In this document: positions 1 through 49,434 of the stretch, piece after piece
Position numbering within the stretch: position 1 is the first letter of the stretch
Layout of the letters: the number at the start of each line of letters is the position of its first letter
Source of the DNA: Blastocladiella emersonii ATCC 22665
Taxonomy: Eukaryota; Fungi; Blastocladiomycota
Reading direction: 5' to 3'
NCBI GenBank assembly: GCA_025594325.1
Contig: JANHCV010000006.1
Location: forward strand, 62,001-126,000
DNA: 64,000 bases
Notes under the pieces: model-generated
Database searches by the model: none
What the model saw: only the letters and a program-made list of their open reading frames with translations
What the model was told of the DNA's origin: nothing
Translations under genes and position numbers: made by a program

Positions 1-992
1 CGCCATCATCGACTCAAACTACGGCCGTTTTGCACCAGCAACAGGCTGAGCCCGCCGCCACGCAGGTTGAGGGCCGCGTCGTGGTCGGCCTCATCGAGCC
101 TGGCGCCTGTCCCCGCCAACTCGGCCTGCTGTTTGGCCGCCTTCGCCCATCAAGGCGTCAACGTCGCTGGGCTTCTCTCTATGGGCCTTCACACTGCGGC
201 TCCGCTCGACAAGGCGGCTGCAAGCAACGTCGACATCATCATCAAGTTCGGGTCGTCGCCCGCCGTGGTCATGAACGACCAGCGCGCGATTCATTCGCTC
301 CGAAATGCAGCCAGGGATTATGCTAAGCTGACGTCTACTCGATAGGACTACGTCGGACGCGATTGACTCTGTGAGCGAGCACAAGGTCGTATGATAGCGA
401 TAAAGCTGGCGGGCGCAGGTTTCTTTCGACCTCGGCCTTCTCGTGCATGGCCGCCCTCCAGGCCGCCTCCTCGAGCGAGCTGTCGCGGCGGTGCGAGACG
501 CGTTGCGCAATCGCGTGCCAGAGGGCGCCAGATCTGCCTGCCCCTCTCTCCTGCCCTCTCTCCATCCCCTGTTCGAACACACCACGCTCGAAACCCTACC
601 CATGGACTTGATGCAATCTCATGAATACAGCTCGGGTAACATCGAGCTCGCTTGGCTCGGCTTACCGCAGGTAGAAGTGTGAACGCCGCCCTGCAGCTGG
701 CCGAGCCGCGGTTCCCAAGCGCGTCCGCTTCAACTTTTGTTCACGCCACGGCCTGAGGTGGAAGTATCACTCGGCGCTCGTGGTTTTTCATCATAGCTGG
801 CCGGTTTCTTGCGCATCCCACCCGCACTCCCCGCTACATCCGCGCCCCGCTCAAGAACTCCCTGTCGCGCCTCGTCCTCCCGGACGTCAACCCAACTTTT
901 GGCGCAGAACCCGGATCTTACTGTATTTTTATGTGGAACTACAGGCTCGCTCCACCACCGGTTCCGCTGTTGCTTGAACTCGCTTTGCACCT

Positions 993-2411
993 GTGTCGCT
1001 GTATTCGCCTTGGCGACTTGGGGGCCGTCAAATTTACCCCAAGATCTGGAACGGTCGTTGTCTGCGGATGGACGGAATCTATTGTGTCAAGTTCTCAGTT
1101 CTCGACCTAATCGCTTTCGTATGCCATCAGCTCCTTGACGCGTGCAGTCACTGCCTTCCTGGCCCGGCCCAGTCTGGTTTGCTGATTGCGGCCCTCTTCT
1201 ACCTTGCCGTCTCGCGGTGGAAGTCTGCAAGCTATTCTTTTTGCGTTGCTTAGCAAGCCTTGGTATGCAGTTTACACGCCAGCACTTGAAGCTGTGCATT
1301 GCGCCAACGGTCCGTTGGAATTCGCCCTCCAAGGATCGCCAGTCCATCACGCTCCAACGAACTCCACGGATATGTGTCTTGTTTCCTCAGGCACAACTCG
1401 CAAATGTTGAACCAGGTACGCAGCGCCTGTGTGCAGGCGGCCGTGGATATACACATGAATGAGGCCTTTTTGCCGCTACTTGCCCGGTTCTCCAACCCGG
1501 TCGCGGCTGGTATTCCGTCTTGAAACGATATCGGGGGCGTATGCCTCAACGTATTGTGTTTTCCCAAATCGGACAAAGGCGACTGCGAGCCCTTCGACCA
1601 GCTTGGCGAGAGAGTCCGTCTCTTCCGTTGCAGACGGTCGTTTGCGGGTCAGCCCGCCTGGCGCATTCCTTTCCTCGCGCTTATGGACGTGAGTACCAGC
1701 AAGTCTCAGCACTACAAGTACCTCGTGCCGCCGTCCGGGATGGCTTCGTGCTACAATGCGAGCACGTTGAAGTTGGCAAAAACGATGATACTGGCTGGCA
1801 GTACACTTGCGACCGCCTCAGCTTGGATCAGCTTGTAAGCCGGGTCCTTTTCTTGGGTGATTCGTGTGAGATGTTCCGTTCGGTTCCGCGACCTGCAGGA
1901 TGAGGTAGAGGCGAAGGAGAAAACACTTTCCCTCCGCTGAACTGCAGATCCACGTTGAGCGACGTGACAACGTTACCTTCACGCTCGGCGGATCGGAACC
2001 CACTGCTGCTCCTGTTAATGCTACTGCTGGTTTTCCGCTGCAATCAATCAATCTCCTTGAGAGCTCCTGATCTGATCGACTGGAGAAGGGAGCGCGTCGA
2101 CTGCGCGTGAGTCGTGCACATACGCAACAACGTGTTGGTTGGGTGGTCAGTTGGCTGGTGGTTTGGCGCGAGTTTGCAGGCATGACATTGTTCTCAGCTG
2201 TAGCTTTAGCGAAGCTGAGTTTCTGTTTGAGCAATTGAAACCTATCAGAGACATCAACCTGCACGTGAACCAAGCTTTGTCTGCAGTTCTGGCCCCCGAC
2301 CCCAACTCTCTTGGTCTAGCTCTCATTCCAAGTCCCCGACTCCCCGCATTGGCCTCAGCCCGGTGTAATAAAAATTCTGACACTGCTTATTTGATGCGGC
2401 GACCTACTTGA
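993..2411 (+). pseudogene. Possible decayed long ORF of unknown family
   Basis: ORFs 993..1253, 1299..1523, 1554..1838 and 2139..2411 share one frame and are separated by stops; lower GC than core genes; no recognisable motif. Confidence 0.3.
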
Positions 2412-3328
2412 ACGTCTTTGAGTGCGCGGCAAGTCGCAGCGACAGTGGAGCGGTCAGTCGCTGGTGTCTCCCACTGCTGCGCCACCCGCTGAGCCACCCG
2501 CTGAGCCACCGCTCTCCGACCCCGCCTGCAGCTCCGTTGCCAACCGTTACGACTGCTTTCGAAGAACAACAATCAGCGCAGCATCAAGGTCGCGCAAAAA
2601 ATCATTATGAAGCAGCCGGCGCAAAATATAGGTCCTCTATTCCCGCTGTTTCCCCAAACTGACTTCAATCTGGCCGCCCGAACTGTCGCGCTTTGATCCG
2701 TCTTTTTCTTTTTCTTGAAGCGCAAAAAAATTGAAAGTTTGTGAATCGCCCGATTACCGAGGTAGTTCAAGGTCATAGATCTCGGTTGTCGTTTGCAAGG
2801 AAATGATTTCATTCTTGGCGATGGGTACCGTCTACAAAGTGATTACTGAGGGGTAGCGATGACGTGACGTACACATTGACTGGAGAAAGCTCAACATGCA
2901 CGCAGCAAGGCGAGAGCGGTGCAACGCGACCCCAAAACAGACAGAGTACAACACCGGGGTCCACAACCACGGCTGGATCGCGCCCGCTAACTGAGCCTAG
3001 CCCGGCGATAAGAAAGAAGGGTCAGCAGCGTCAGGCGTGTACGCGCCCGCTGTATCGCACTGAAAGTAGTCAGCCGCAAATTGTACTCGACACCGCGTAC
3101 TACGTCGTGCGGGTCGACCTGCACGACACAATTCTGTCTCGCTCCAACGCGTCGTTGATAAGGTTAAGGGCGAGGCGCACATGTACGTCGTTGACGCGAT
3201 GGACATCAAGGACGGGCCCTGCGTCGAGATCATCTTGGGCTCGGTCCTGATCGCTGGTCAGACGTCGGCCGCGTGCAAAAGATACTCACGGCGACGCTTG
3301 TTGCGTTCCGCTCGATAGCCATCGCCCA

Positions 3329-3425
3329 GAAACCACGCAGAACCGTAGGTGATGGATAAGCCACTTCACGTGATATTCGTAGACTAATAAAACCAAAACA
3401 AACGACCTGGTCTGAACCCCGCCTC
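3329..3425 (+). repeat. DIRS left inverted terminal repeat
   Basis: GAAACCACGCAGAACCGTAGG...GAACCCCGCCTC is the reverse complement of 7009-7105 with one mismatch (GACCTGG versus GACCCGG). Confidence 0.93.
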
Positions 3426-3518
3426 TTCACGTCACGCCCGACCGGCAACTGATTTGGTCCACGGCGACGCTGTCGCCCTGTAACTCCACGCAATCTGCTC
3501 TACACACACTACTCTTTC

Positions 3519-3596
3519 ATGGACGATGCAGCAGTCCTGGGCCAGGCGTTCCTCGGCCTCCAGCAGGAAGTCGCTGTACTCTGCCAGCAGCTCGGG

Positions 3597-3631
<35 letters not shown>

Positions 3632-4676
3632 ACATGAACAACAACAAGCAGAAGCTGATCCTCATGCGTCCTCCCCACTGGCGCCCTTGCACCGCGCGGA
3701 CCCTCCACGCGGCAGGGCTCTCGCCAGCTGGTACGAGCGCGCCCGTGGCGGTCATGCCCTCACGCAGCCGCTTCTGGACTCCTTCATCGACAACCGCGCG
3801 GGTGGCCGCCTCCAGAACCACGGGTTCGGCCAGCAGTACCCTGCGCCTGATCATCCCCTCTTCAACTCGCTGTCCGAGATCGACGTCTTTGCCCGCGTTG
3901 GCTTTGAGGGCGCTTCCGGTACCGGCTGGACCCATGCTGTGGTCGAGAAGCGCCTGCGCGACTACCAGTCCAAGCTCAACCTCAGTGCTCGCGTCGCGCT
4001 ACAGCAGCTGCACTACGCTCAAGAGCTTCTACGCCGCGTCGATCCAGACGGCTTCCGCCGCTGCTATGGCGACGCCGCCGGTGACGCGCTCGGTCCGGAC
4101 GACCTCGCCGGCTTCGTCTACCCGCCCAAGCCCATGTTCGACGCCAACGGCCAGCCCGTCCTTGACGGGGCAGGCCAGCAGCTCATCGAGACGTACCTGC
4201 ATCCCCCTCGTCTCGTCGCGACCCTCTGGGCCATGCACAATGCAGCGCGCGACCAGCTCGCGCACAACCGGCACCATTTCGGCCTTCTCAAAGCTGCGCG
4301 TCGCGACAACGTGGCCGCTGGCGCCCGCTTCCCGGCGGCGGTCGCCGAGTTCGTCCGCTCGGTCCCCAGCGACGGTGACCGGTTCCTCTTTGGTCCCAAT
4401 GTCGAGCGCACCTTCGACGCCGCTCGCACGGTCCAGTCTACCAACGCTATCATCAAGCTCGCCAACAGGGCGGGAAACGCCTCGGGCGGCGACGGCAGTG
4501 GTCGTGGCGGCGCCGCATCTTCCCAAGGCGCCCCAGCCGCGCAGGGGCGCGGCTGGGGTCGCGGTGGCTTCCGCGGCCACCAGCAGTACCAGCAGCAGTA
4601 CCAGCAACCTCAACAGCAGCGGCCTCAACAGCAGCAGCCTCAACAGCAGCCGCAGTCCAACCCAAAGCTCAACTAG
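3519..4676 (+). CDS. DIRS ORF1, gag-like protein with poly-Gln tracts
   Basis: 385-aa ORF just inside the left ITR and upstream of the RT. Assigned by position; no diagnostic motif. Confidence 0.7.
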
Positions 4677-6655
4677 CGGCCGTTGCAACAGTCGCGCCGG
4701 CGGCCAGCTCCGAGGACGAGATCTTCCTGTCGACGCTCGCCAAGGGCACGCGTTTCCCGCTCGAGGTGGTCAACACGTCCATGAGGGCGGACCAGTGGGC
4801 CTCGAGGACGACCAACGTCGAGGCGCGCAAGATGGCGACCAAGGGCGTCCGCCTGTCGTTCATGACGCCGCCGCCGGATCGTTCGGCGGCGCCGATGCGC
4901 GAGTTCCGCCACTCGGACAAGGACCTGGCCAAGATCACGCTGCAGATCGACGAGCTCATCGCGACGGGGGCAGTGGAGCCGTGCCCGCGTCCGCGGTACC
5001 TGTTGTCGCCGTTCCTTGTCCGCTAGCCCAACAAGGACCGGCTCTGCTTTGACATGTTGGAGCTGTCTGAGCACCTGACGCGCAACTCGTTCAAGATGGA
5101 GTCGCTCGCGGTGGCGACGCCGATGCTGTCCAGGGGATGCTACCTGGCCAAGCTCGACCTCAAGTCGGCGTACCACAGTGTGCCAGTGCACCCCGCGCAC
5201 CGCGACTTCCTGGCCTTCAACTGGGCCGGTCGGACGTGGCGCTGGCGCGTCCTCCCGTTTGGTCTTGGGTTGGCGCCGCGCCTGTTCACCAAGGTGATCC
5301 AGGGCGCGCTCCAGCCGTTGCGCGCGGCGGGGCACAAGTTCGTCCAGTACATCGACGACATTCTGGTGATTGGCGAGACACCCGAGCAGGTGCGCGCGAC
5401 TCTCGCCGCTCTTGCTCGCCAGCTGCTGGCCCTGGGCTACACCCTGAACCTGACCAAGTCGTGTCTCGTCCCCGCCCGCGTCCAGACGTTCCTCGGGTTC
5501 AAGATCAACACGACCAACATGACGCTGTCGCTCCCCAAGGAGAAGGTCCGCAAGATCGAGCGCGAGTGCCGCTCGCTGCTTGCGGCGGGTCGGTGCTCAG
5601 CGCGCCGGCTGGCAGCGGTCCTTGGCATGCTCAACTCAACGGCGCAGGGGTTCCGGCCAGCGCTGATCCAGCAGCGGTGGCTCCAGCGCTGCCTGTCATT
5701 TGGCCTCGCGCGCACGTCGTCGTGGGCGGCGACGATTCCAATCTCGCCGAGCGCCCGCAAGGAGCTGACGTGGTGGGTGACCAACGTTCGTCGCTGGAAC
5801 GGTCGTTTGTTCATCCCGCCAACCGCGGCCATCGAGTTCACGACCACAACAGACGCCAGCCAGACGGGCTGGGGGATCGTTTTCTCAGACGGCACAACGC
5901 AGGGGTCGTGGTCGCCGTGGGAGGCGGCGCAGTCGAGCAACTACCGCGAGCTCAAGACGATCCTGTTCGCCGTCAAGATCAAGTGCCGCGAGTGGTTGGG
6001 TCGGGCGGTGCAGCTCCGGTCCAACAACACGACAGCGATCGCCATGGTCAACAAGCAGGGCGGCACGGCGTCGCCCAAGCTGCTGGCGCTGGCCAAGGAG
6101 CTGTGGTCGCTCCTGCTCGAGTACAACATCCACCTGACGGCGTTGTTCATCAAGGGCGTCGAGAACGTGGCGGCGGACTGCGCGAGCCGGGTCCTCGTCA
6201 ATCGGCACCGGTACTCGCTGACGTTGGCGGCGTTCAAGCGCGCCATGGCGGCGCTGCGCGCGAGCCCGACAGTCGACCTGTTCGCCAACCAAGTCAACAC
6301 GCAGCTCCCGGCCTACTACTCGCTGCAGCCGGATCCGCAAGCACTGGGCACCGACGCGTTCAAGTTCCAGTGGCCAAGGACGGGCGCGTACGCGTTTCCG
6401 CCGCCGAACCAGATCGCGCGGGTCGCCCAACGGGTGCGATCGGCGCGGATTTGCGATCTGATCCTCGTCACGCCGGCGTGGCAGTCGCAGCCGTGGTACC
6501 TGGCGCTGCTCCCGCTCGCGACGGCCAAGCCGCTGCACCTGCCTTCCAGCGCGGTGCTGCGGGAGTCGCCGACTACGCACCGTGTTCATCTGTCAGCATT
6601 GGGTGTCTTTGTCTGGCGGCTACAACACGATGCGTGGCGCGACTCGAGCAGCTGA
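4673..6655 (+). pseudogene. DIRS pol: reverse transcriptase, RNase H and Dam-like N6-adenine methylase, interrupted by an in-frame TAG
   Basis: RT motifs KLDLKSAYHSVP, LPFGLGLAP, YIDDIL, FLG; RNase H TDAS...WG, NYREL, SNNTTA, NVAAD; methylase VDLFA and YAFPP. ORFs 4766..5026 and 5054..6655 share a frame, split by TAG at 5024-5026. Confidence 0.9.
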
Positions 6656-6848
6656 GCTCGCCCAAAACGCGTCCTTCCTTGGCCCGCCGCGTGCTCCAGC
6701 TCCTCGCACTCGCAGTGCACCTGTTCCTCGTCCTCTGCCGCCCGTCCCGCACCATGGTCAAGATCGCGCTCCGCGGCCAAGTGGGACTGCTGCCACGCGC
6801 CGCGTCCACAGCGCCTGCGTGCTTGGGGTTGTGGCTACGGCACAAAAA

Positions 6849-6924
6849 ATCCATCACCTACGGTTCTGCGTGGTTTCTTGAGGCACCACCGCTAGAGCCA
6901 CTGAAGGTGGCGTGTGGTGATGGA
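6849..6924 (-). repeat. DIRS internal complementary region (ICR)
   Basis: ATCCATCACCTACGGTTCTGCGTGGTTTCT is complementary to the left terminus and is joined to TGAGGCACCACCGCTAGAGCCACTGAAGGTGGCGTGTGGTGATGGA, complementary to the right-end extension. Together they form a pre-built circle junction. Confidence 0.9.
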
Positions 6925-7008
6925 AACCACACAGACCGGGCCCACCCACGCAGCTGCAGCCGCGTCTCCTCTCCCTTTGTTTCTCTCATCCGGTTGGGCA
7001 TGCCGCTT

Positions 7009-7105
7009 GAGGCGGGGTTCAGACCGGGTCGTTTGTTTTGGTTTTATTAGTCTACGAATATCACGTGAAGTGGCTTATCCATCACCTACGGTTCTGCGTG
7101 GTTTC
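7009..7105 (-). repeat. DIRS right inverted terminal repeat, followed by a right-end extension (7106-7160)
   Basis: Reverse complement of 3329-3425; the extension is complementary to the ICR. Confidence 0.93.
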
Positions 7106-7969
7106 CTCCATCACCCACCACACGCCACCTTCAGTGGCTCTAGCGGTGGTGCCTCAAGAACGCGAGTCAGGGTGACGCCCAGCTCATCATCCTCACGGGC
7201 TTTGCCGCGCTCAACAAGGAGCTCAGCTGCAATGTGTACACGACCAATATTGAGGTTGGCGGTGCCCAAATCATACACTGCGGCGCTTCATGGCGTTGTC
7301 CAAATTATCCAAGTTTTTATTAACCTTCCCGCCCACTGCAACACACCGCGCTTGATCCTTCACCCGCCAATCAGCAACCCAGCGACCGTCGCTGCCGCGG
7401 ACCTGGCCTTGGCCTTCTTGTCAGTGGCTTCTTTGTTTGCAAAGGGTGCCGCCAATGAAGCCTCGTACCAGTTCGGCGAGGTGGATCGCAAGCTTACGAA
7501 CCGCAACACAGAAAGCACACGGCTGGTACAGGTGCGTGAGGTCGACTGGTTCTTAGACTGCTTCTCATGGACCGGGACCATGAGCAGGTGCTTGGGCGAA
7601 CGTTCTCTCCAGCAAGGCTGCGGACAATCCGCGCTCAGGAACAAGGCGGCGTGGGCGGCTGCGACCTTGGTCACGAGGGCTTCTCCCGCTCCTCAACTTT
7701 GTTAACTCGGTTTACTTAACTGGCACAGACTATCAGGCAGCCAGCGCGACTTGTTTGAGTCCAGCTTCAGTTCCAACCATGAGCCACGGCTTTGAGTGCT
7801 TGCTCAACCGAATAACGTGATTTTCCGCGGCCACAATGCTCATGGCCGTGGGGGAGTTGGCCATGGACGCGTGCCTACTGCGCGCATTGTACCTGCGCTG
7901 CTGTTCTCATCATTGACACGGCAGACTAAAGCTACAGCTGAGACCCAAGTGTGTGCGCAGCACACACAC

Positions 7970-8006
7970 CTAGTACTTGATGCACCTAAACGCTTTCGCG
8001 TTTGGT
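7970..8006 (-). mobile_element. Candidate Helitron 3' terminus (mirror copy)
   Basis: Palindrome mirror. Confidence 0.5.
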
Positions 8007-8155
8007 TTTCAATTGAGGGCTAAAGCCCCCGCCACGTTTGGTGCACGAGTGGTGGAGGTGCTGTCGCGTGCGTCCCGCACAGGAGGTTTAGGTGATCAAG
8101 CTATGGAAATCGTGCTATTGATGGATTAGATGATGGAATACACTACGTTAATACT

Positions 8156-9613
8156 CTACTGTGTTTTCTGTTTCTTGGCGTTCTGTGAGCCGTCCTCGCC
8201 TCCAGCACGTTTGTTGGCCAATCGCCAAAACCTTGCATTGAGAGCATCTGACGCGCGCTTGGCGACTAGCTTCTCAGCCGCGTGCTGACGCGAGAAGAGA
8301 ATCGCGTCATTGAAGAGCTTGGCGATGCGCGGGTCGCCTGGTGCGATGGCTGTACCTTGATCAAAGGCAGGCTTGGTCAGCTCGTCGAGCATCTGGAGCC
8401 GCTTGTCCTCGGCCACTGCAAGTGGATCCGGCTTCCATGGACTTGAGCACGGCTCTTGGGATCGGCTGAAGCACCCACAGGTACTTTGAGCGACGAAGCT
8501 GCGATAACGCCACGTACAGGGAAGCGCCGCTGATGAGACGCTCCATGCCCGCGGGACGCAGATCTGCCAGGGCGATGGCGTTCTTGGTCACGCCTTGAAC
8601 CCCGTGGACCGTCATGGCGAAGGCTGGGACCATTGGGTACTGCTCAATGTGCGTGACGACGACATGATTAGGATACTTGCTCCTGTTGGCTTTGGTTTTG
8701 GTTTTGGTTTTGGTTTTGGTTTTGGTGTTGTTGACACAGAGCGGGAGCGAATCCCCCGTTGTGCTGACGACCCGCTCTCGCAACGTGGAACCGCCCGCCA
8801 TGTACAGGAAGTCCTTCTTCTCCACAGCAAGCGGGATGACCGTGTCAGGCCACGCGGCCAGCATGCCTGGGAAGCGAGGGCCACAAGGAGCGTCGGGCAG
8901 GTCGATCCACACGTTGAGTGGAGCGCAGGATGGCCGGTACATGTTGGACGCGGTTCGCGTGAATGTGGTCTCAGGCTTCCAGTCAATGTGGTGCACAACG
9001 CCAACCGCACTGTTCGCGCACCCCTTTGCTACGCACTCGTTGGTCTTGACGCGCATCTCCATTCCAACAAAGAGCTTGAGGATGGCTGGCAGTTCAGTCG
9101 TGGTTTCTGGCTCTCCTTTGAGGCAGAACACGTCCTTGTCGCAGATGGCGACGCGTTCACGCGTGCGACGCCTATCACACGGGCGCGTGATGTTGCCCTT
9201 GATCTGGAACATGATGCGGTTTGGGTTTGCTGCTGCAAGCCGTGTGTAGAGCAGGTTGAAGGCGTGGCGCGTGTGGTTGTTGGGCGCGATAACCGTGAGT
9301 CTGGGCTTCTTGAGGATCTCCTTGAGGACGTTTTTGCCGTTTTTGTCGACTCTGCTGCTGAAGCTGAGTGGTCGTACGCGAGTTGATCAGGTTGCACAGC
9401 GTGTCCGACGCCTCGACGAGGCAGAGCGCGTTCATTTCGTTGCCCCATGGTGGATTGTTGGCAAATCGGTTGCTCTTCACGAGACAAACAGCGCGTGTAG
9501 TGCGCCAGTGCGCGACCTGGACTCGATCCACGTGCTCGGGGACCGTCAATTGATTTGACGTCATGCGCAGGTAGAACGAGTCTGGCGCGTCGTTGAGCAC
9601 GGCGGGCACCTTG
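8156..9613 (-). pseudogene. Helitron-like PIF1 (SF1B) helicase, C-terminal half, frameshifted
   Basis: Motifs LPAILKLFVGMEMRVKTN...AN(S)AVGVV, QYPMVPAFAMTVHGVQGVT and YVALS(Q)L, then AEDKRLQMLDELT in another frame. Walker A/B are absent because the fold-back cuts the gene. Confidence 0.8.
9574..9613. other. 40-bp non-palindromic loop at the palindrome centre
   Basis: Sequence GAACGAGTCTGGCGCGTCGTTGAGCACGGCGGGCACCTTG; pairing fails at 9574/9613. On the minus strand it reads in frame with the helicase (YKVPAVLNDAPDSFYLRM). Confidence 0.95.
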
Positions 9614-11031
9614 TACCTGCGCATGACGTCAAATCAATTGACGGTCCCCGAGCACGTGGATCGAGTCCAGGTCGCGCACTGGCGCACTACACGCGCTGTT
9701 TGTCTCGTGAAGAGCAACCGATTTGCCAACAATCCACCATGGGGCAACGAAATGAACGCGCTCTGCCTCGTCGAGGCGTCGGACACGCTGTGCAACCTGA
9801 TCAACTCGCGTACGACCACTCAGCTTCAGCAGCAGAGTCGACAAAAACGGCAAAAACGTCCTCAAGGAGATCCTCAAGAAGCCCAGACTCACGGTTATCG
9901 CGCCCAACAACCACACGCGCCACGCCTTCAACCTGCTCTACACACGGCTTGCAGCAGCAAACCCAAACCGCATCATGTTCCAGATCAAGGGCAACATCAC
10001 GCGCCCGTGTGATAGGCGTCGCACGCGTGAACGCGTCGCCATCTGCGACAAGGACGTGTTCTGCCTCAAAGGAGAGCCAGAAACCACGACTGAACTGCCA
10101 GCCATCCTCAAGCTCTTTGTTGGAATGGAGATGCGCGTCAAGACCAACGAGTGCGTAGCAAAGGGGTGCGCGAACAGTGCGGTTGGCGTTGTGCACCACA
10201 TTGACTGGAAGCCTGAGACCACATTCACGCGAACCGCGTCCAACATGTACCGGCCATCCTGCGCTCCACTCAACGTGTGGATCGACCTGCCCGACGCTCC
10301 TTGTGGCCCTCGCTTCCCAGGCATGCTGGCCGCGTGGCCTGACACGGTCATCCCGCTTGCTGTGGAGAAGAAGGACTTCCTGTACATGGCGGGCGGTTCC
10401 ACGTTGCGAGAGCGGGTCGTCAGCACAACGGGGGATTCGCTCCCGCTCTGTGTCAACAACACCAAAACCAAAACCAAAACCAAAACCAAAACCAAAGCCA
10501 ACAGGAGCAAGTATCCTAATCATGTCGTCGTCACGCACATTGAGCAGTACCCAATGGTCCCAGCCTTCGCCATGACGGTCCACGGGGTTCAAGGCGTGAC
10601 CAAGAACGCCATCGCCCTGGCAGATCTGCGTCCCGCGGGCATGGAGCGTCTCATCAGCGGCGCTTCCCTGTACGTGGCGTTATCGCAGCTTCGTCGCTCA
10701 AAGTACCTGTGGGTGCTTCAGCCGATCCCAAGAGCCGTGCTCAAGTCCATGGAAGCCGGATCCACTTGCAGTGGCCGAGGACAAGCGGCTCCAGATGCTC
10801 GACGAGCTGACCAAGCCTGCCTTTGATCAAGGTACAGCCATCGCACCAGGCGACCCGCGCATCGCCAAGCTCTTCAATGACGCGATTCTCTTCTCGCGTC
10901 AGCACGCGGCTGAGAAGCTAGTCGCCAAGCGCGCGTCAGATGCTCTCAATGCAAGGTTTTGGCGATTGGCCAACAAACGTGCTGGAGGCGAGGACGGCTC
11001 ACAGAACGCCAAGAAACAGAAAACACAGTAG
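9614..11031 (+). pseudogene. Helitron-like PIF1 helicase C-terminal half (mirror copy)
   Basis: ORFs 9593..10012, 9975..10826 and 10771..11031 carry the helicase in successive pieces with frame changes. Confidence 0.8.
10461..10496 (+). repeat. (ACCAAA)n microsatellite inside the helicase frame (mirror near 8691-8726)
   Basis: About six ACCAAA units encoding TKTKTKTKTKTK. Confidence 0.9.
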
Positions 11032-11180
11032 AGTATTAACGTAGTGTATTCCATCATCTAATCCATCAATAGCACGATTTCCATAGCTTGATCACCTAAA
11101 CCTCCTGTGCGGGACGCACGCGACAGCACCTCCACCACTCGTGCACCAAACGTGGCGGGGGCTTTAGCCCTCAATTGAAA

Positions 11181-11217
11181 ACCAAACGCGAAAGCGTTTA
11201 GGTGCATCAAGTACTAG
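11181..11217 (+). mobile_element. Candidate Helitron 3' terminus (hairpin plus CTAG)
   Basis: Hairpin ACCAAACGC-GAAA-GCGTTTAGGT (11181-11203), then CTAG at 11214-11217, about 180 bp downstream of the helicase stop. The next base is G rather than the usual T. Confidence 0.5.
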
Positions 11218-12262
11218 GTGTGTGTGCTGCGCACACACTTGGGTCTCAGCTGTAGCTTTAGTCTGCCGTGTCAATGATGAGAACAGCAGCGCAGGTACAA
11301 TGCGCGCAGTAGGCACGCGTCCATGGCCAACTCCCCCACGGCCATGAGCATTGTGGCCGCGGAAAATCACGTTATTCGGTTGAGCAAGCACTCAAAGCCG
11401 TGGCTCATGGTTGGAACTGAAGCTGGACTCAAACAAGTCGCGCTGGCTGCCTGATAGTCTGTGCCAGTTAAGTAAACCGAGTTAACAAAGTTGAGGAGCG
11501 GGAGAAGCCCTCGTGACCAAGGTCGCAGCCGCCCACGCCGCCTTGTTCCTGAGCGCGGATTGTCCGCAGCCTTGCTGGAGAGAACGTTCGCCCAAGCACC
11601 TGCTCATGGTCCCGGTCCATGAGAAGCAGTCTAAGAACCAGTCGACCTCACGCACCTGTACCAGCCGTGTGCTTTCTGTGTTGCGGTTCGTAAGCTTGCG
11701 ATCCACCTCGCCGAACTGGTACGAGGCTTCATTGGCGGCACCCTTTGCAAACAAAGAAGCCACTGACAAGAAGGCCAAGGCCAGGTCCGCGGCAGCGACG
11801 GTCGCTGGGTTGCTGATTGGCGGGTGAAGGATCAAGCGCGGTGTGTTGCAGTGGGCGGGAAGGTTAATAAAAACTTGGATAATTTGGACAACGCCATGAA
11901 GCGCCGCAGTGTATGATTTGGGCACCGCCAACCTCAATATTGGTCGTGTACACATTGCAGCTGAGCTCCTTGTTGAGCGCGGCAAAGCCCGTGAGGATGA
12001 TGAGCTGGGCGTCACCCTGACTCGCGTTCTTGAGGCACCACCGCTAGAGCCACTGAAGGTGGCGTGTGGTGGGTGATGGAGGAAACCACGCAGAACCGTA
12101 GGTGATGGATAAGCCACTTCACGTGATATTCGTAGACTAATAAAACCAAAACAAACGACCCGGTCTGAACCCCGCCTCAAGCGGCATGCCCAACCGGATG
12201 AGAGAAACAAAGGGAGAGGAGACGCGGCTGCAGCTGCGTGGGTGGGCCCGGTCTGTGTGGTT

Positions 12263-12338
12263 TCCATCACCACACGCCACCTTCAGTGGCTCTAGCGGTG
12301 GTGCCTCAAGAAACCACGCAGAACCGTAGGTGATGGAT
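12263..12338 (+). repeat. Mirror copy of the DIRS ICR
   Basis: Palindrome mirror. Confidence 0.9.
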
Positions 12339-12531
12339 TTTTTGTGCCGTAGCCACAACCCCAAGCACGCAGGCGCTGTGGACGCGGCGCGTGGCAGCAG
12401 TCCCACTTGGCCGCGGAGCGCGATCTTGACCATGGTGCGGGACGGGCGGCAGAGGACGAGGAACAGGTGCACTGCGAGTGCGAGGAGCTGGAGCACGCGG
12501 CGGGCCAAGGAAGGACGCGTTTTGGGCGAGC

Positions 12532-14514
12532 TCAGCTGCTCGAGTCGCGCCACGCATCGTGTTGTAGCCGCCAGACAAAGACACCCAATGCTGACAGATG
12601 AACACGGTGCGTAGTCGGCGACTCCCGCAGCACCGCGCTGGAAGGCAGGTGCAGCGGCTTGGCCGTCGCGAGCGGGAGCAGCGCCAGGTACCACGGCTGC
12701 GACTGCCACGCCGGCGTGACGAGGATCAGATCGCAAATCCGCGCCGATCGCACCCGTTGGGCGACCCGCGCGATCTGGTTCGGCGGCGGAAACGCGTACG
12801 CGCCCGTCCTTGGCCACTGGAACTTGAACGCGTCGGTGCCCAGTGCTTGCGGATCCGGCTGCAGCGAGTAGTAGGCCGGGAGCTGCGTGTTGACTTGGTT
12901 GGCGAACAGGTCGACTGTCGGGCTCGCGCGCAGCGCCGCCATGGCGCGCTTGAACGCCGCCAACGTCAGCGAGTACCGGTGCCGATTGACGAGGACCCGG
13001 CTCGCGCAGTCCGCCGCCACGTTCTCGACGCCCTTGATGAACAACGCCGTCAGGTGGATGTTGTACTCGAGCAGGAGCGACCACAGCTCCTTGGCCAGCG
13101 CCAGCAGCTTGGGCGACGCCGTGCCGCCCTGCTTGTTGACCATGGCGATCGCTGTCGTGTTGTTGGACCGGAGCTGCACCGCCCGACCCAACCACTCGCG
13201 GCACTTGATCTTGACGGCGAACAGGATCGTCTTGAGCTCGCGGTAGTTGCTCGACTGCGCCGCCTCCCACGGCGACCACGACCCCTGCGTTGTGCCGTCT
13301 GAGAAAACGATCCCCCAGCCCGTCTGGCTGGCGTCTGTTGTGGTCGTGAACTCGATGGCCGCGGTTGGCGGGATGAACAAACGACCGTTCCAGCGACGAA
13401 CGTTGGTCACCCACCACGTCAGCTCCTTGCGGGCGCTCGGCGAGATTGGAATCGTCGCCGCCCACGACGACGTGCGCGCGAGGCCAAATGACAGGCAGCG
13501 CTGGAGCCACCGCTGCTGGATCAGCGCTGGCCGGAACCCCTGCGCCGTTGAGTTGAGCATGCCAAGGACCGCTGCCAGCCGGCGCGCTGAGCACCGACCC
13601 GCCGCAAGCAGCGAGCGGCACTCGCGCTCGATCTTGCGGACCTTCTCCTTGGGGAGCGACAGCGTCATGTTGGTCGTGTTGATCTTGAACCCGAGGAACG
13701 TCTGGACGCGGGCGGGGACGAGACACGACTTGGTCAGGTTCAGGGTGTAGCCCAGGGCCAGCAGCTGGCGAGCAAGAGCGGCGAGAGTCGCGCGCACCTG
13801 CTCGGGTGTCTCGCCAATCACCAGAATGTCGTCGATGTACTGGACGAACTTGTGCCCCGCCGCGCGCAACGGCTGGAGCGCGCCCTGGATCACCTTGGTG
13901 AACAGGCGCGGCGCCAACCCAAGACCAAACGGGAGGACGCGCCAGCGCCACGTCCGACCGGCCCAGTTGAAGGCCAGGAAGTCGCGGTGCGCGGGGTGCA
14001 CTGGCACACTGTGGTACGCCGACTTGAGGTCGAGCTTGGCCAGGTAGCATCCCCTGGACAGCATCGGCGTCGCCACCGCGAGCGACTCCATCTTGAACGA
14101 GTTGCGCGTCAGGTGCTCAGACAGCTCCAACATGTCAAAGCAGAGCCGGTCCTTGTTGGGCTAGCGGACAAGGAACGGCGACAACAGGTACCGCGGACGC
14201 GGGCACGGCTCCACTGCCCCCGTCGCGATGAGCTCGTCGATCTGCAGCGTGATCTTGGCCAGGTCCTTGTCCGAGTGGCGGAACTCGCGCATCGGCGCCG
14301 CCGAACGATCCGGCGGCGGCGTCATGAACGACAGGCGGACGCCCTTGGTCGCCATCTTGCGCGCCTCGACGTTGGTCGTCCTCGAGGCCCACTGGTCCGC
14401 CCTCATGGACGTGTTGACCACCTCGAGCGGGAAACGCGTGCCCTTGGCGAGCGTCGACAGGAAGATCTCGTCCTCGGAGCTGGCCGCCGGCGCGACTGTT
14501 GCAACGGCCGCTAG
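12532..14514 (-). pseudogene. DIRS pol RT/RNase H/methylase (mirror copy)
   Basis: Palindrome mirror, same stop codon. Confidence 0.9.
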
Positions 14515-15555
14515 TTGAGCTTTGGGTTGGACTGCGGCTGCTGTTGAGGCTGCTGCTGTTGAGGCCGCTGCTGTTGAGGTTGCTGGTACTGCTGCTGGTA
14601 CTGCTGGTGGCCGCGGAAGCCACCGCGACCCCAGCCGCGCCCCTGCGCGGCTGGGGCGCCTTGGGAAGATGCGGCGCCGCCACGACCACTGCCGTCGCCG
14701 CCCGAGGCGTTTCCCGCCCTGTTGGCGAGCTTGATGATAGCGTTGGTAGACTGGACCGTGCGAGCGGCGTCGAAGGTGCGCTCGACATTGGGACCAAAGA
14801 GGAACCGGTCACCGTCGCTGGGGACCGAGCGGACGAACTCGGCGACCGCCGCCGGGAAGCGGGCGCCAGCGGCCACGTTGTCGCGACGCGCAGCTTTGAG
14901 AAGGCCGAAATGGTGCCGGTTGTGCGCGAGCTGGTCGCGCGCTGCATTGTGCATGGCCCAGAGGGTCGCGACGAGACGAGGGGGATGCAGGTACGTCTCG
15001 ATGAGCTGCTGGCCTGCCCCGTCAAGGACGGGCTGGCCGTTGGCGTCGAACATGGGCTTGGGCGGGTAGACGAAGCCGGCGAGGTCGTCCGGACCGAGCG
15101 CGTCACCGGCGGCGTCGCCATAGCAGCGGCGGAAGCCGTCTGGATCGACGCGGCGTAGAAGCTCTTGAGCGTAGTGCAGCTGCTGTAGCGCGACGCGAGC
15201 ACTGAGGTTGAGCTTGGACTGGTAGTCGCGCAGGCGCTTCTCGACCACAGCATGGGTCCAGCCGGTACCGGAAGCGCCCTCAAAGCCAACGCGGGCAAAG
15301 ACGTCGATCTCGGACAGCGAGTTGAAGAGGGGATGATCAGGCGCAGGGTACTGCTGGCCGAACCCGTGGTTCTGGAGGCGGCCACCCGCGCGGTTGTCGA
15401 TGAAGGAGTCCAGAAGCGGCTGCGTGAGGGCATGACCGCCACGGGCGCGCTCGTACCAGCTGGCGAGAGCCCTGCCGCGTGGAGGGTCCGCGCGGTGCAA
15501 GGGCGCCAGTGGGGAGGACGCATGAGGATCAGCTTCTGCTTGTTGTTGTTCATGT

Positions 15556-15590
<35 letters not shown>

Positions 15591-15668
15591 CCCGAGCTGC
15601 TGGCAGAGTACAGCGACTTCCTGCTGGAGGCCGAGGAACGCCTGGCCCAGGACTGCTGCATCGTCCAT
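14511..15668 (-). CDS. DIRS ORF1 gag-like protein (mirror copy)
   Basis: Palindrome mirror. Confidence 0.7.
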
Positions 15669-16775
15669 GAAAGAGTAGTGTGTGTAGAGCAGATTGCGTG
15701 GAGTTACAGGGCGACAGCGTCGCCGTGGACCAAATCAGTTGCCGGTCGGGCGTGACGTGAAGAGGCGGGGTTCAGACCAGGTCGTTTGTTTTGGTTTTAT
15801 TAGTCTACGAATATCACGTGAAGTGGCTTATCCATCACCTACGGTTCTGCGTGGTTTCTGGGCGATGGCTATCGAGCGGAACGCAACAAGCGTCGCCGTG
15901 AGTATCTTTTGCACGCGGCCGACGTCTGACCAGCGATCAGGACCGAGCCCAAGATGATCTCGACGCAGGGCCCGTCCTTGATGTCCATCGCGTCAACGAC
16001 GTACATGTGCGCCTCGCCCTTAACCTTATCAACGACGCGTTGGAGCGAGACAGAATTGTGTCGTGCAGGTCGACCCGCACGACGTAGTACGCGGTGTCGA
16101 GTACAATTTGCGGCTGACTACTTTCAGTGCGATACAGCGGGCGCGTACACGCCTGACGCTGCTGACCCTTCTTTCTTATCGCCGGGCTAGGCTCAGTTAG
16201 CGGGCGCGATCCAGCCGTGGTTGTGGACCCCGGTGTTGTACTCTGTCTGTTTTGGGGTCGCGTTGCACCGCTCTCGCCTTGCTGCGTGCATGTTGAGCTT
16301 TCTCCAGTCAATGTGTACGTCACGTCATCGCTACCCCTCAGTAATCACTTTGTAGACGGTACCCATCGCCAAGAATGAAATCATTTCCTTGCAAACGACA
16401 ACCGAGATCTATGACCTTGAACTACCTCGGTAATCGGGCGATTCACAAACTTTCAATTTTTTTGCGCTTCAAGAAAAAGAAAAAGACGGATCAAAGCGCG
16501 ACAGTTCGGGCGGCCAGATTGAAGTCAGTTTGGGGAAACAGCGGGAATAGAGGACCTATATTTTGCGCCGGCTGCTTCATAATGATTTTTTGCGCGACCT
16601 TGATGCTGCGCTGATTGTTGTTCTTCGAAAGCAGTCGTAACGGTTGGCAACGGAGCTGCAGGCGGGGTCGGAGAGCGGTGGCTCAGCGGGTGGCTCAGCG
16701 GGTGGCGCAGCAGTGGGAGACACCAGCGACTGACCGCTCCACTGTCGCTGCGACTTGCCGCGCACTCAAAGACGT

Positions 16776-18194
16776 TCAAGTAGGTCGCCGCATCAAATAA
16801 GCAGTGTCAGAATTTTTATTACACCGGGCTGAGGCCAATGCGGGGAGTCGGGGACTTGGAATGAGAGCTAGACCAAGAGAGTTGGGGTCGGGGGCCAGAA
16901 CTGCAGACAAAGCTTGGTTCACGTGCAGGTTGATGTCTCTGATAGGTTTCAATTGCTCAAACAGAAACTCAGCTTCGCTAAAGCTACAGCTGAGAACAAT
17001 GTCATGCCTGCAAACTCGCGCCAAACCACCAGCCAACTGACCACCCAACCAACACGTTGTTGCGTATGTGCACGACTCACGCGCAGTCGACGCGCTCCCT
17101 TCTCCAGTCGATCAGATCAGGAGCTCTCAAGGAGATTGATTGATTGCAGCGGAAAACCAGCAGTAGCATTAACAGGAGCAGCAGTGGGTTCCGATCCGCC
17201 GAGCGTGAAGGTAACGTTGTCACGTCGCTCAACGTGGATCTGCAGTTCAGCGGAGGGAAAGTGTTTTCTCCTTCGCCTCTACCTCATCCTGCAGGTCGCG
17301 GAACCGAACGGAACATCTCACACGAATCACCCAAGAAAAGGACCCGGCTTACAAGCTGATCCAAGCTGAGGCGGTCGCAAGTGTACTGCCAGCCAGTATC
17401 ATCGTTTTTGCCAACTTCAACGTGCTCGCATTGTAGCACGAAGCCATCCCGGACGGCGGCACGAGGTACTTGTAGTGCTGAGACTTGCTGGTACTCACGT
17501 CCATAAGCGCGAGGAAAGGAATGCGCCAGGCGGGCTGACCCGCAAACGACCGTCTGCAACGGAAGAGACGGACTCTCTCGCCAAGCTGGTCGAAGGGCTC
17601 GCAGTCGCCTTTGTCCGATTTGGGAAAACACAATACGTTGAGGCATACGCCCCCGATATCGTTTCAAGACGGAATACCAGCCGCGACCGGGTTGGAGAAC
17701 CGGGCAAGTAGCGGCAAAAAGGCCTCATTCATGTGTATATCCACGGCCGCCTGCACACAGGCGCTGCGTACCTGGTTCAACATTTGCGAGTTGTGCCTGA
17801 GGAAACAAGACACATATCCGTGGAGTTCGTTGGAGCGTGATGGACTGGCGATCCTTGGAGGGCGAATTCCAACGGACCGTTGGCGCAATGCACAGCTTCA
17901 AGTGCTGGCGTGTAAACTGCATACCAAGGCTTGCTAAGCAACGCAAAAAGAATAGCTTGCAGACTTCCACCGCGAGACGGCAAGGTAGAAGAGGGCCGCA
18001 ATCAGCAAACCAGACTGGGCCGGGCCAGGAAGGCAGTGACTGCACGCGTCAAGGAGCTGATGGCATACGAAAGCGATTAGGTCGAGAACTGAGAACTTGA
18101 CACAATAGATTCCGTCCATCCGCAGACAACGACCGTTCCAGATCTTGGGGTAAATTTGACGGCCCCCAAGTCGCCAAGGCGAATACAGCGACAC
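16776..18194 (-). pseudogene. Mirror copy of the possible decayed ORF at 993-2411
   Basis: Palindrome mirror. Confidence 0.3.
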
Positions 18195-20218
18195 AGGTGC
18201 AAAGCGAGTTCAAGCAACAGCGGAACCGGTGGTGGAGCGAGCCTGTAGTTCCACATAAAAATACAGTAAGATCCGGGTTCTGCGCCAAAAGTTGGGTTGA
18301 CGTCCGGGAGGACGAGGCGCGACAGGGAGTTCTTGAGCGGGGCGCGGATGTAGCGGGGAGTGCGGGTGGGATGCGCAAGAAACCGGCCAGCTATGATGAA
18401 AAACCACGAGCGCCGAGTGATACTTCCACCTCAGGCCGTGGCGTGAACAAAAGTTGAAGCGGACGCGCTTGGGAACCGCGGCTCGGCCAGCTGCAGGGCG
18501 GCGTTCACACTTCTACCTGCGGTAAGCCGAGCCAAGCGAGCTCGATGTTACCCGAGCTGTATTCATGAGATTGCATCAAGTCCATGGGTAGGGTTTCGAG
18601 CGTGGTGTGTTCGAACAGGGGATGGAGAGAGGGCAGGAGAGAGGGGCAGGCAGATCTGGCGCCCTCTGGCACGCGATTGCGCAACGCGTCTCGCACCGCC
18701 GCGACAGCTCGCTCGAGGAGGCGGCCTGGAGGGCGGCCATGCACGAGAAGGCCGAGGTCGAAAGAAACCTGCGCCCGCCAGCTTTATCGCTATCATACGA
18801 CCTTGTGCTCGCTCACAGAGTCAATCGCGTCCGACGTAGTCCTATCGAGTAGACGTCAGCTTAGCATAATCCCTGGCTGCATTTCGGAGCGAATGAATCG
18901 CGCGCTGGTCGTTCATGACCACGGCGGGCGACGACCCGAACTTGATGATGATGTCGACGTTGCTTGCAGCCGCCTTGTCGAGCGGAGCCGCAGTGTGAAG
19001 GCCCATAGAGAGAAGCCCAGCGACGTTGACGCCTTGATGGGCGAAGGCGGCCAAACAGCAGGCCGAGTTGGCGGGGACAGGCGCCAGGCTCGATGAGGCC
19101 GACCACGACGCGGCCCTCAACCTGCGTGGCGGCGGGCTCAGCCTGTTGCTGGTGCAAAACGGCCGTAGTTTGAGTCGATGATGGCGGGCGACGACTTGGC
19201 TGCACGATCGTCCTGCAAGTCGTCGATCTTGGCGGTGGAACTCTCCGGGGCTCTCTGAAATGCTACACGACACAAACAGCGGTCAGTTTGTGCGCGCGGA
19301 TGGCAGTCAGTCAATCTTGACCAAAAATGCGTACCTCACACGGTCTTGACACGATTCTGCTTCTCGGCCTTGACGGCCTGGTCCGAGTCGTGCAGCTCGA
19401 ACGTCAATACAAGGGCCTTGGTGATGGCGGTGACGGGTACGGCGCAGGTTGGCGCGCGCTTGGTGGCGGAGGCGGGGACGGTTCTCAAGGTCACGGCCTA
19501 GGCGAGCTGTTCAGTCGATGCAGCGGAGAATGCGGCGAGGATCCCTAAGTCGATGATGACGAGCAATCCAAAGAGCTCGACAGACGCCGGGAACGATGGC
19601 GGGCGAGGGCGACGCGACGCAGAGTTGGTCACCTCGGCCTCGGCAATGGCGCGCGGATCGGTTGAGCCGACTCGACGACGACGTTGCGCTTGACGGCAGC
19701 GTTGGCATTACCAAAAGTCGACGCATCGAGGTTAGAAGCGTTTCATGGGACGAGCGAGCGAATCGGGGCCAGCAGAGGGAGAAAAAGCGGGCGGCGTGAT
19801 CTTGCTGCGCCACCACCACCGCTCCACCACCGCTCGCGTCAGCGAAACGCTTCCCTGATCATCACGAATCCGGCCTGGGCTGCTGCTGCTGCTTGATTGC
19901 AAGGCGAGAAGAAGATCAGAACCAATCGTGCTGCGGCATGTACACTATCCGATTGTGCGGCCCGGCGGGGGTGCCCGGGCTGGCGTTCACACATCGCAGT
20001 CGATGATGGGCAACGTTTGCTAGAAATCCTAGGTGGGTTTGTATTGCCAGTGTTGAGAGGGTAGTGGTGGGGGTGTAGGAGGTATTCACGCGATGATATG
20101 GGTTGATGCAAGGTCGAGGTTGGGTTTGTGGGGAGGGAAGGGACGGCGCGCGATGCACAGGGTGAGCGGGCGAGCCCCAAACGCTGCCCTACGGACGCCG
20201 CCGGATCCAGTGGTCGGA

Positions 20219-23200
20219 CTAGTCGAGAGGCAGGGGCGGAGGAAGGAAGAGCGCCAAGGCCGCCGCACGCGTTGAGGGAGATGACGAGCTTGATAGGTGC
20301 GCAGTAGGCGCCGCGCGCAGCGGACAGGGGTAGGGAGGCGGGCGGTGGCGCGGGTAGAGCGGGTGGAGTCGCGAGGAGGAGATGGGGTTGGGAGGGAGCG
20401 AGCGGCTTGACAACGACAACAAGGATCCCGATGCGGACAAGGACGCGGGCGCGGCGGGCGGGGCCCTGCGACGACAGTACGCGGCAATCTCGGCGAGAAT
20501 GTCGAGCACCACCTGCGGCGGGCCCGAGGCGGCGTCGCCGTTGCCGAAGCCCTCGCCGCCAATGTTGCCGTCGTGGTCGCGCTTGCGGTTGGGCTTGGGC
20601 TCAGCAAAGAGACCCGCGATCATGTTGGGCGCCACGGCACACAGCTTGGCGGCCATGGTGAGCCTCGGGTTGTCGTCGCAGCAGCAGCCGCGCTCGGACA
20701 GCGCCGCCGCGTGAGCGGGACCGTAGGGGCAATGGGCGAGGTAGCCGTGCCCGCCGTGATCCGTGCACGTCGCTGCCGCCCTGGCCACCACCGCTCCGAT
20801 CTGGATCAGGGTCGGCGGCGAGTATTTCTGCACGGCGAGGAGGTACATGCGGATGCCGTCCTTGATCGACAAAGTAGAAGCCGACAACAACGACGACGAC
20901 GACGACCCCAGCTGGTCCGACAGCACGCCCGAGTCGAGGACGGCGGCCCACAGCATGGCCTCGAGCGTCTGCCGCCACCCGCGCCGGTGCTGCAGCGGGC
21001 ACGGCGGGACGAGCGGGCAGCCGCCCGTGTCCTCGGCGTTGTTGGGCCCGATCGGCGCGAGATGGCGGACGGGCTCGAGGCTGATCTCGGTGGAACCGCC
21101 GCCGAACAGGACCGCGAGCATCCCCGAGACGAGGGTCTCGACCTCGCCGCTCTGCGCGATCGCCTTGACCACCGCCGTCAGCTTGTGCCCCACGGTCGGC
21201 AGCGCCATGCCGAGGGCCGCGCAGGTCAGCCGCGCGACGTACGGGTCGCGCAGCGTCGACTTGAGATGGGCGTGGAGGCGGCCGGCAGCGAGCCGGTCCT
21301 GCTCGCTCATGGACGACGTGGGACCCGCGTCGCGGATGCGCTTGCTGCTGAGCAGTAGCCGCAGCACGACGGCAATGAGGTCCCGCGGCGCAGCCCGTCG
21401 TTCTTCGGGTACGCCGGCGGCCGCGTCACCCGCGAGAATTTGGGCGAGCGACCCGAGCGGCGGGGCCTGGACCGCGGCGGCCGCCGAGTGGTCGTGTTGC
21501 TGCTTCTGTTGCCGTTTCTGCTGCTGCTGCTGCTCCTGGCAGCACGGCGCCGCTGACTGCCGGTCCGTCTGGATCTGCAGGTAGTAGTCAATGTGCGCGT
21601 CGAACCCATCAAAGAGCACGGCGCGGCACTCGTCGAGCACCTGGCCAAACTCGCAGTCGCCCTGGACCAGGTCGCGAACGCGCGCGACTGCAACGTGAAG
21701 GTGCTGCGGTCCCTTTTTCCTCGTGGAAAAGATCATGCTGCGCACGATCACTAGTAGTAGGAGAAGTAGTCGGTTTGGGGAGAGAGAGAGAGACGCGAGC
21801 GGTTAGCAGGGGCTGAGTGACGGGATCGGGATCGGGGCGGGCAGTAATAGGGGAAAGCGTACCCTCGCCGAGACTACGGAACCACTGCGCGGATGCCTTG
21901 GACTGCGTCTTCTGCTCGAGCATCAGGTCGCGGAACAGCTTGAGGTTGTCGTGCGGGACGTACGAGAAGCCAAGGGCCGCCCACGAGTGCGCGCCGAACA
22001 CCAGGTTGCGCGCGGCCGGGCGCACGTTCGAGATGACGCGCAGCAGGTCCACCTCGCCCGACAGCGCCGCGTCGAAGCGCTCGTGGTCCCACAGCGCCGC
22101 GGCCCAGTCCTGCTGCACGAGCTCGGCGAGGACCACACGGGCCTGCTGCTGCTCCTCCTCGATGACGGCCTTGGCCGTCGACGGCGATGCCGACGCCTTG
22201 GGTCTGCACGCGGAGGTCCACTCGCAGACGGGGCCGAGCACGAAAATCTCCTTGACGAGCTCCTTGAAGTTGGGGTGGGGGCGGTACGAGGGGCGGGGCA
22301 GGCTGTCGGCGGCGGCGGGTTCTTGGAACGGGTCGGCGAGGCGGGCGAAGCGGGCGAGGGCGGGCAGGTTCCGCGACGTGAGCGCGAGCACGCGGAGGAA
22401 CTGGTACCCGGTCATGGCGCCCTTGGTCGGGTCGGCTGCCCAGCACAGCTTGGCGACGGGGTGGTCGCCCAGGTTGACGAGCGCCAGCCACGCGTCCCAC
22501 GACCGCTTGACGGTGCTGAGGTACCACGAGACCACGCCGTCGGTCGCGAGCAGCAGCGCGTCGAGGAGATGGACATGGGCGGCCTTGGCGTCGGGATGAA
22601 GATCGGCCCACGCCGTGGCGCCCGTCGTGACCCCGCCGGCGGTGGCGATGGTCAGCAGGCGCAGGAGCGTCGCGAGCGCCGTGTTGGCGAGGTCCCGCAG
22701 CAGGGCGTCGTCGTCGGGCGCGGCGGCGGCGGCGGCGAGCGTGGTGCCCTCGCAGCTGCCCGAGTACGAGCGCGAGTACGAGTCCGAGTCGACCTGCATG
22801 GCCTCATCGCAGTCGGCGTCGGCGTCGGCATCGGCGGCCTTGGCGGCAGACTCGACGAAGCGCGCGAACACGGGCGACCGCACCGTGCCGATGGCCCATT
22901 TGGCGAGCCCCATGACGGCGCAGACATGGTCCTCGGGCGCCACGAGTTGCACGAGGGCGCAGCTGGCGGACTCTTGCCGATGGCGGCTCTCGCCGATCCG
23001 TCGGTCGCGGAGGTACGTGGCAGCGAGTTCGAGGGCACGCGAGGGAGAGTGCTGCGAGGACTGCGAGAACTGCGAGGACTGCGAGAACTGCGAGGACGAC
23101 GAGGACGACGAGGACGCGGCGAGCGGCGGGGAGGTAGACGACAGCGACTCGGCCGAGAGCATCACGGCGGCCGACAGGTGGTTGATGTACGCGAGAACCC

Positions 23201-23489
23201 CGAGGATCCCGCCCGATACCGGGACATGGGCCGTGTCCGTCGGCGTAGAAGAGGACGACGACGATGCGGCGGCGGGAGCGGCAGCGGCGGCAGCGGGCGG
23301 ATCAGGCACGGGGGAGAGGTCGGCCGCCGAGTCGGTACGGCCGCGGCCCTGGTTGACGCGGAGCGGCGGCGCCGAAAAGGTGGATTCTACTTCTCGGTTG
23401 CGCTGCCGCTGCCGCTTCGCGTCCTTGCGGCACTGCGCCCTGGTGCGCTTGCTGGCGGCGGGCGGATCGGCGGCGGGCGCGGCACCCAC
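20219..23489 (-). CDS. Large hypothetical protein (about 1050 aa, at least two exons)
   Basis: ORFs 21609..23489 and 20219..21751 join in frame via intron 21751-21862 (GTACGC donor, GCTAAC branch, CTAG acceptor). GC-rich coding style; no recognisable domain; 3' end uncertain. Confidence 0.65.
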
Positions 23490-28638: not shown

Positions 28639-28783
28639 GGTGGTCGTGGTCGCGGAGAGCGAGGACTGCTGCCGACCATCTCCGCCGAGTTGGACCACAT
28701 CGCAAGCGTGCTCCCATTGCGCCGGCGTCTGCATCCTCGAAACCTGCCAATATCACACGACTGACAGTCCAAGACTCGCTGCA

Positions 28784-29014: not shown

Positions 29015-29038
29015 TCCATTCTCTACACCCTCGCTACC

Positions 29039-49336: not shown

Positions 49337-49434
49337 TGCAGTGGTGACCAAACCAGCGCTCAAACCCAAAACCAGGGGCTCTGTCGCGGCGTCTACGCTC
49401 CCCGCACCACCCCTGCATGCAATGAAACGCTACC

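Follow-up and report, generated by a model that had tools for sequence, protein, structure and literature searches.

How does a large palindrome with virtually identical arms and almost no spacer come to stand within a fungal chromosome? The question is raised by a stretch of 64,000 nucleotides from Blastocladiella emersonii ATCC 22665 (GenBank assembly GCA_025594325.1, contig JANHCV010000006.1, positions 62,001 to 126,000 of the forward strand), which we refer to as the window; its contig, C18 in what follows, is 2,021,495 bp long, and the window is C18:62001-126000. An initial annotation, made from the letters of the window alone, had described an apparently perfect 19.2-kb palindrome folded back inside a Helitron helicase, and had offered causes ranging from a chromosomal rearrangement to a library or assembly chimera. 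We report here the full extent of this palindrome, the parental sequence of its turn and the identity of its original outer edge, and we conclude that fold-back or template-switch synthesis, starting inside a helicase-bearing (Helitron-like) transposable element, has probably produced a real inverted duplication of about 18.55 kb in the chromosome.

Extent and symmetry of the palindrome

Symmetry was examined over C18:1-156000, that is, the window together with 62 kb to its left and 30 kb to its right. Window positions 1-9573 and 9614-19186 are exact reverse complements without a single mismatch, separated by a 40-bp loop (9574-9613) that has no internal symmetry, just as the initial annotation had stated. 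The size of 19.2 kb, however, is an effect of the window edge. The symmetry extends leftward past the window start, with C18:59187-62000 giving a 100% opposite-strand match to the sequence right of 19186, and the whole palindrome occupies C18:52991-90196, about 37.2 kb, with arms of about 18.55 kb each (C18:53023-71573 and C18:71614-90164). In window coordinates its parts are:

1-9573: inner part of the left arm, the reverse complement of 9614-19186; the arm continues left to C18:53023, with a frayed edge to C18:52991.
9574-9613, minus strand: loop of 40 bp, formed by the 40 bp that come next in the helicase-bearing element; collinear with the left arm and in frame with the helicase.
9614-28164: right arm, 18,551 bp, perfect to 27939, with a mismatch at 27940 and perfect again to 28164.
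28165-28196: frayed outer edge, which together with the adjoining base pairs with C18:52991-53022 and holds 4 arm-to-arm differences.

Walking outward from the centre, the arms run for 18,326 bp without a mismatch, differ at one position (C18:53247, paired with window position 27940), are perfect for a further 224 bp, and then enter a 33-bp zone with 4 mismatches, after which the symmetry is gone. Three of these four differences fall at synonymous third-codon positions. Alignment of one arm against the other by blastn gives a single match of 18,586 bp at 99.968% identity with no gaps, and the frayed edge is itself recovered as a 31-bp match (90% identical, E=5e-5) beyond which similarity ends. 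The alignment of the arms that had been called for thus yields 5 differences over their full length, all confined to the outermost 257 bp, and these differences show the ends of the two arms to be distinct sequences in the genome.

The palindrome is internal to its contig, with 53 kb to its left and 1.9 Mb to its right. The window start, which had been put forward as a possible contig end, lies 62 kb into a 2.02-Mb contig, and a palindrome reaching the contig start is ruled out by the end of the symmetry near C18:52991. The assembly consists of 21 contigs with an N50 of 2.02 Mb, and the telomere repeat is AAACCT (PMC9730499); the first 200 bases of C18 are a CAG-rich, coding-like repeat and are non-telomeric, AAACCT repeats being found instead at the starts of C2 and C11. 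With arms that end at 18.55 kb, inside the contig, the assembled sequence does not have the form of the hairpin-capped end or the isochromosome proposed earlier.

The turn within a helicase-bearing element

The innermost 1.6 kb of each arm is part of a repeat with at least 20 copies in the genome, at 90-97% identity, and it is comparison with these sister copies that makes the turn readable base by base. The features involved are:

9614-11217, plus strand: 3' 1.6 kb of the element, with the C-terminal half of a PIF1-type helicase (frameshifted), a hairpin and CTAG; the mirror copy is at 7970-9573.
9571-9573: GTA, one half of a 3-bp microhomology.
9614-9616: TAC, the other half, at the novel joint between loop and right arm.

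The reverse complement of 9574-9616, which is the loop plus TAC, directly precedes arm-type sequence in about 20 other copies of the element, and most canonical copies match across all 43 bases, GTA included. Because the sister copies carry the equivalent of the loop directly before the arm sequence, the loop is the next 40 bp of the element and not filler. As judged from these copies, the only novel joint at the turn is that between the loop and the right arm, with GTA/TAC common to both sides. The microhomology that had been noted at the start of the right arm is therefore borne out by the sister copies, which show GTA and the reverse complement of the loop before arm sequence. A pre-existing imperfect hairpin at the turn was considered and rejected: the halves of the loop pair by eye at 8 of 14 positions, yet the sequence folds no better than its shuffles.

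The turn lies inside the reading frame of a PIF1-type helicase, as the initial annotation had held. On the minus strand an open frame beginning YKVPAV runs from 9615 across the loop and on into the left arm, and in the sister copies the PIF1 Pfam match (PF05970) ends a few bases 5' of the loop-equivalent; in the closest of them PIF1 is at C15:218149-218490 and the loop-equivalent at C15:218499-218541. This places the turn just after the N-terminal domain of the helicase. At the palindrome the 5' part of the element, including the PIF1 domain, is missing, and the C-terminal fragment that is present is frameshifted, has no Pfam match and gives weak matches to PIF1 and Helraiser chains (E 0.01-0.75). 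The earlier argument that the duplication is younger than its mutationally decayed contents is supported.

The identification of the element as a Helitron stands in part. The helicase agrees with it, as does the 3' end, where a 6-bp-stem hairpin is followed by CTAG at 11214-11217, where the repeat ends; on the other side, none of the 12 genome matches to the Rep domain (Helitron_like_N, PF14214) adjoins any copy of the element family. From these sequence features we regard the element as likely to be a Helitron. The sole place in the genome where Helitron_like_N and PIF1 occur in one open frame (1,481 aa) is C2:728386-731715, a candidate intact Helitron.

Many of the PIF1 matches in the genome occur as pairs with identical scores, inverted or direct, on several contigs. 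Inverted pairs are present at C20:622059-622475 (minus) and 634048-634464 (plus), at C12:7051-7503 (minus) and 51278-51730 (plus), and at C1:341485 (minus) and 368640 (plus), and a pair in direct orientation at C20:1092420 and 1392140; the inverted pair on C20 represents two head-to-head copies of the palindrome's own element family, 11.6 kb apart. These same-score pairs suggest numerous recent segmental duplications.

The original outer edge and the flanking DNA

Which of the two arms is the parental one is indicated by a gene that crosses the right outer edge:

27130-28734, minus strand: complete gene for an Rtt109-type histone acetyltransferase, straddling the right outer edge (HAT_KAT11, E=1.8e-18, residues 55-223).

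The first 190 or so residues of this protein are encoded in the unique right flank, and its HAT_KAT11 match is the only one in the genome. The copy in the left arm is limited to residues 180-534, a stop lying 17 codons upstream of the edge, and no homologue of the Rtt109 N-terminus is present within 60 kb on the left side. The gene is thus whole at the right edge and truncated at the left, and hence the right arm and right flank are original and the left joint is new.

Beyond the edges the left and right flanks are no more similar to each other than are control regions, and the 3 kb of left flank adjoining the joint are single-copy in the genome. Diverged homology continuing past the identical arms, the mark of a palindrome maintained by conversion, was not found, the flanks being at control level. 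The view that the flanks are old diverged copies of one another is likewise rejected, as a collinear tblastx chain between them was equalled by the controls, inverted hits were equal to direct ones, and there is no Rtt109 N-terminus on the left. Capture of a telomere by copying of a donor chromosome end is not supported, given the single-copy left flank at the joint. To the right of the palindrome there are direct repeats at 46844-47670 and 49407-50239 (82%) and at 62205-63564 and C18:127047-128414 (75%); together with the resemblance, at the protein level, of the right flank to the 20 kb that follow it, these point to tandem paralogues in that region.

Contents of the arms

Each arm contains the element fragment, other repeats, a retroelement and about 9 kb of DNA that is rich in open reading frames (ORFs) and without Pfam matches. 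The element accounts for 1.6 kb of each 18.55-kb arm, and the 17 kb or so beyond its 3' end are ordinary chromosomal DNA. The retroelement is represented by:

12532-14133, minus strand: reverse-transcriptase ORF of the retroelement (RVT_1, E=9.4e-24); the mirror copy is at 5054-6655, plus strand.

Most of the long ORFs of the arm were searched against Pfam without a match. This includes the long ORFs at 20219-23489, which lie inside the right arm and hence exist in two identical copies.

Other inverted repeats in the genome

Three further large inverted repeats were examined. The first is on the same contig, 19 kb to the left of the palindrome (C18:4802-14896 and 23718-33812), and has arms of 10,095 bp with 2 mismatches, one of them 33 bp from the outer edge, around an 8.8-kb spacer. 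The second, at C16:371658-401643, has a 4.1-kb spacer, an inner 7,088 bp that is perfect and 9.2 kb at 99.6%, with a 5.8-kb tandem duplication; its differences (about 23) cluster no more than 90 bp from the outer edge, and the 9 kb that come next are perfect. The third (C17:1881572-1887670 and 1912131-1918229) is older, with arms of 6.1 kb that are 95.1% identical on either side of a 24-kb spacer; by this divergence it shows that identity is not preserved in every inverted repeat of this genome. The repeats on C18 and C16 thus resemble the palindrome, their arms being perfect and their differences gathered at the outer edge. Neither the C17 nor the C16 repeat is a paralogue of the palindrome, since only fragments of 0.3-0.7 kb are common to them, at 63-75% identity.

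Origin of the palindrome

In the account that we think probable, a break or stalled fork within the dead helicase-bearing element would have left a 3' end in TAC, which could then have paired with the GTA 40 nt behind it. Synthesis from this end would have copied the neighbouring chromosome backwards for 18.5 kb, and a second joint, inside the Rtt109 gene, would have connected the newly made copy with unrelated sequence to its left, with loss of the 5' part of the element. These steps parallel a model developed in yeast (PMC10622511), in which a very short inverted match tens of nucleotides back serves as the pairing site for a 3' end, with spacers longer than 12 nt escaping Mre11; the chromosome is then copied in reverse by fill-in synthesis, and the product becomes stable through a second rearrangement. 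We infer the order of these events and their enzymology, and the perfect identity of the arms may reflect either their youth or later copy-correction.

Several observations weigh against this account. The loop is collinear with the left arm although it is the right arm that is parental, which is a misfit to the simplest one-step model. A 3-bp microhomology is weak on its own, being expected by chance in 1 of 64 cases, and single-stranded DNA from the turn is not unusually prone to fold back, as seen when its folding is set against that of shuffled sequences (z -0.05 to -1.15). A perfect palindrome with so short a spacer should be unstable, and the genome encodes both Mre11 (E=9.5e-43) and a Sae2/CtIP-like protein (42 bits summed); loss of the hairpin-opening machinery was rejected on the presence of these two. 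Finally, the evidence for the central joint and for the copy number of the arms is that of the assembled sequence. To account for the orientation of the loop, one must suppose either that a single crossover between the arms turned the loop round, or that the centre of an older inverted repeat was rebuilt at a later time. The 33-bp frayed edge could in turn come from error-prone synthesis at the second joint, from partial similarity used there, or from the unconvertible rim of an older, copy-corrected repeat.

The older repeat just mentioned forms the basis of a different history, which we hold to be possible, if on the unlikely side. An old inverted repeat with a kilobase-sized spacer would have been kept the same by copy-correction, and its centre would have been rebuilt after a break in the spacer: the end folds at GTA/TAC, copies outward and re-anneals with the other arm, deleting the remaining spacer. 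Such a history explains a left-collinear loop and a parental right edge without an extra flip, it has precedents in the inverted repeats of C18 and C16, with their kilobase spacers, perfect inner arms and frayed outer edges, and it is in keeping with the greater divergence of the last 33 bp (4 differences) than of the rest of the arms. On the other hand, no trace of an old boundary is present inside the arms and the flanks share nothing, while the edge differences are few and could also be produced by error-prone synthesis at a template-switch joint.

It is improbable, in our estimation, that the central joint was made in the course of library preparation or assembly, by an in-vitro fold-back molecule or a graph error, a possibility that the initial annotation had also raised. 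Fold-back chimeras with short microhomology are a known class of artefact (PMC6218980, PMC12870357), the turn is in a repeat with many copies, and the arms are longer than the mean read (10.5 kb). The assembly (LJA, purge_dups and Pilon) nevertheless rests on PacBio HiFi sequencing of DNA that had not been amplified, at about 186x (PMC9730499), and in HiFi genomic data fold-back artefacts were virtually absent when surveyed (PMC12870357). One read of this type would be expected to yield a palindrome extending to the end of a contig and having the same flank beyond both arms, whereas the present structure is internal, has two different unique flanks and carries 5 arm-specific differences. Moreover, the sequence specific to the joint is absent from canonical copies of the element, and so the reads must contain the joint.

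A rolling-circle error, in which replication of a Helitron folds back into a head-to-head dimer, is very unlikely, although the turn lies in an element that encodes a helicase and resembles Helitrons at its 3' end, because some 17 kb of each arm lie beyond the 3' end of the element and are ordinary chromosomal DNA (repeats, host genes and the single-copy Rtt109 gene in its original context), and also since the local element is frameshifted and without its 5' half, the turn falls within an ORF and not at a Rep nicking site, and none of the Rep matches adjoins a copy of the family.

A wider reading of the fold-back account is that B. emersonii regularly makes and tolerates large perfect palindromes throughout its genome, through fold-back template switching and copy-correction between arms, with helicase-bearing elements as favoured turns, with almost spacer-less forms included, and with the present locus as the freshest example. 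We offer this as a tentative and rather doubtful generalization.

Comparison with known systems

The palindrome is probably a fold-back inverted duplication, a known kind of structure with which fold-back inversions in cancers and human inverted-duplication rearrangements are comparable. A close counterpart is found in the fold-back inverted duplications of the yeast sae2 and mre11 work (PMC10622511), which are like the present one in their inverted arms, short parental spacer and microhomology at the turn, as well as in the loss beyond the break and the second, stabilising joint. The Blastocladiella structure differs in being bounded at 18.5 kb and internal to the chromosome between unique flanks, and in having no copied donor segment, its left flank being single-copy. 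It also differs in its pairing of 3 bp and its spacer of 40 nt, and in being fixed in a wild-type laboratory strain and not selected in a nuclease mutant.

The palindromes of the human Y and X chromosomes have near-identical arms that are kept so by arm-to-arm gene conversion, spacers of kilobases and a demonstrated age. They share with this palindrome gene-carrying arms of tens of kilobases, identity above 99.9% and differences confined to the outer edges, but here the spacer is 40 bp and the turn can be dated as younger than a transposon insertion. Fold-back chimeric reads also have an inverted joint, a short loop and a few bases of microhomology, but these are single-molecule events at random sites that run to the end of the read, in contrast to the defined outer edges, different flanks and arm-specific differences seen here. 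The three other inverted repeats examined in this genome are similar in arm size (6-10 kb) and in having perfect or near-perfect arms with frayed outer edges; their spacers are 4-24 kb, whereas the palindrome has hardly any spacer and its turn is legible to the single base by comparison with sister copies.

The paper describing the genome does not mention palindromes (the word occurs 0 times; PMC9730499), and a full-text literature search returned no paper on nuclear palindromes in B. emersonii. If reads confirm the structure, it will provide a clean natural example of a fold-back inverted duplication in which the state of the turn before the event can be read from about 20 sister copies. It will also show that a perfect 37-kb palindrome with a 40-bp spacer persists in a eukaryote equipped with both Mre11 and a Sae2/CtIP-like protein, which bears on how long palindromes of this sort survive. 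Should the genome-wide process hold true as well, it would extend to the almost spacer-less palindromes that other eukaryotes destroy. For users of the assembly there is the practical point that duplicated genes sit in such arms, and that the arms need validation at the level of reads. What is distinctive here among the systems compared is the near absence of a spacer, the use of sister copies to reconstruct the turn to the base, and the marking of the parental edge by a single-copy gene.

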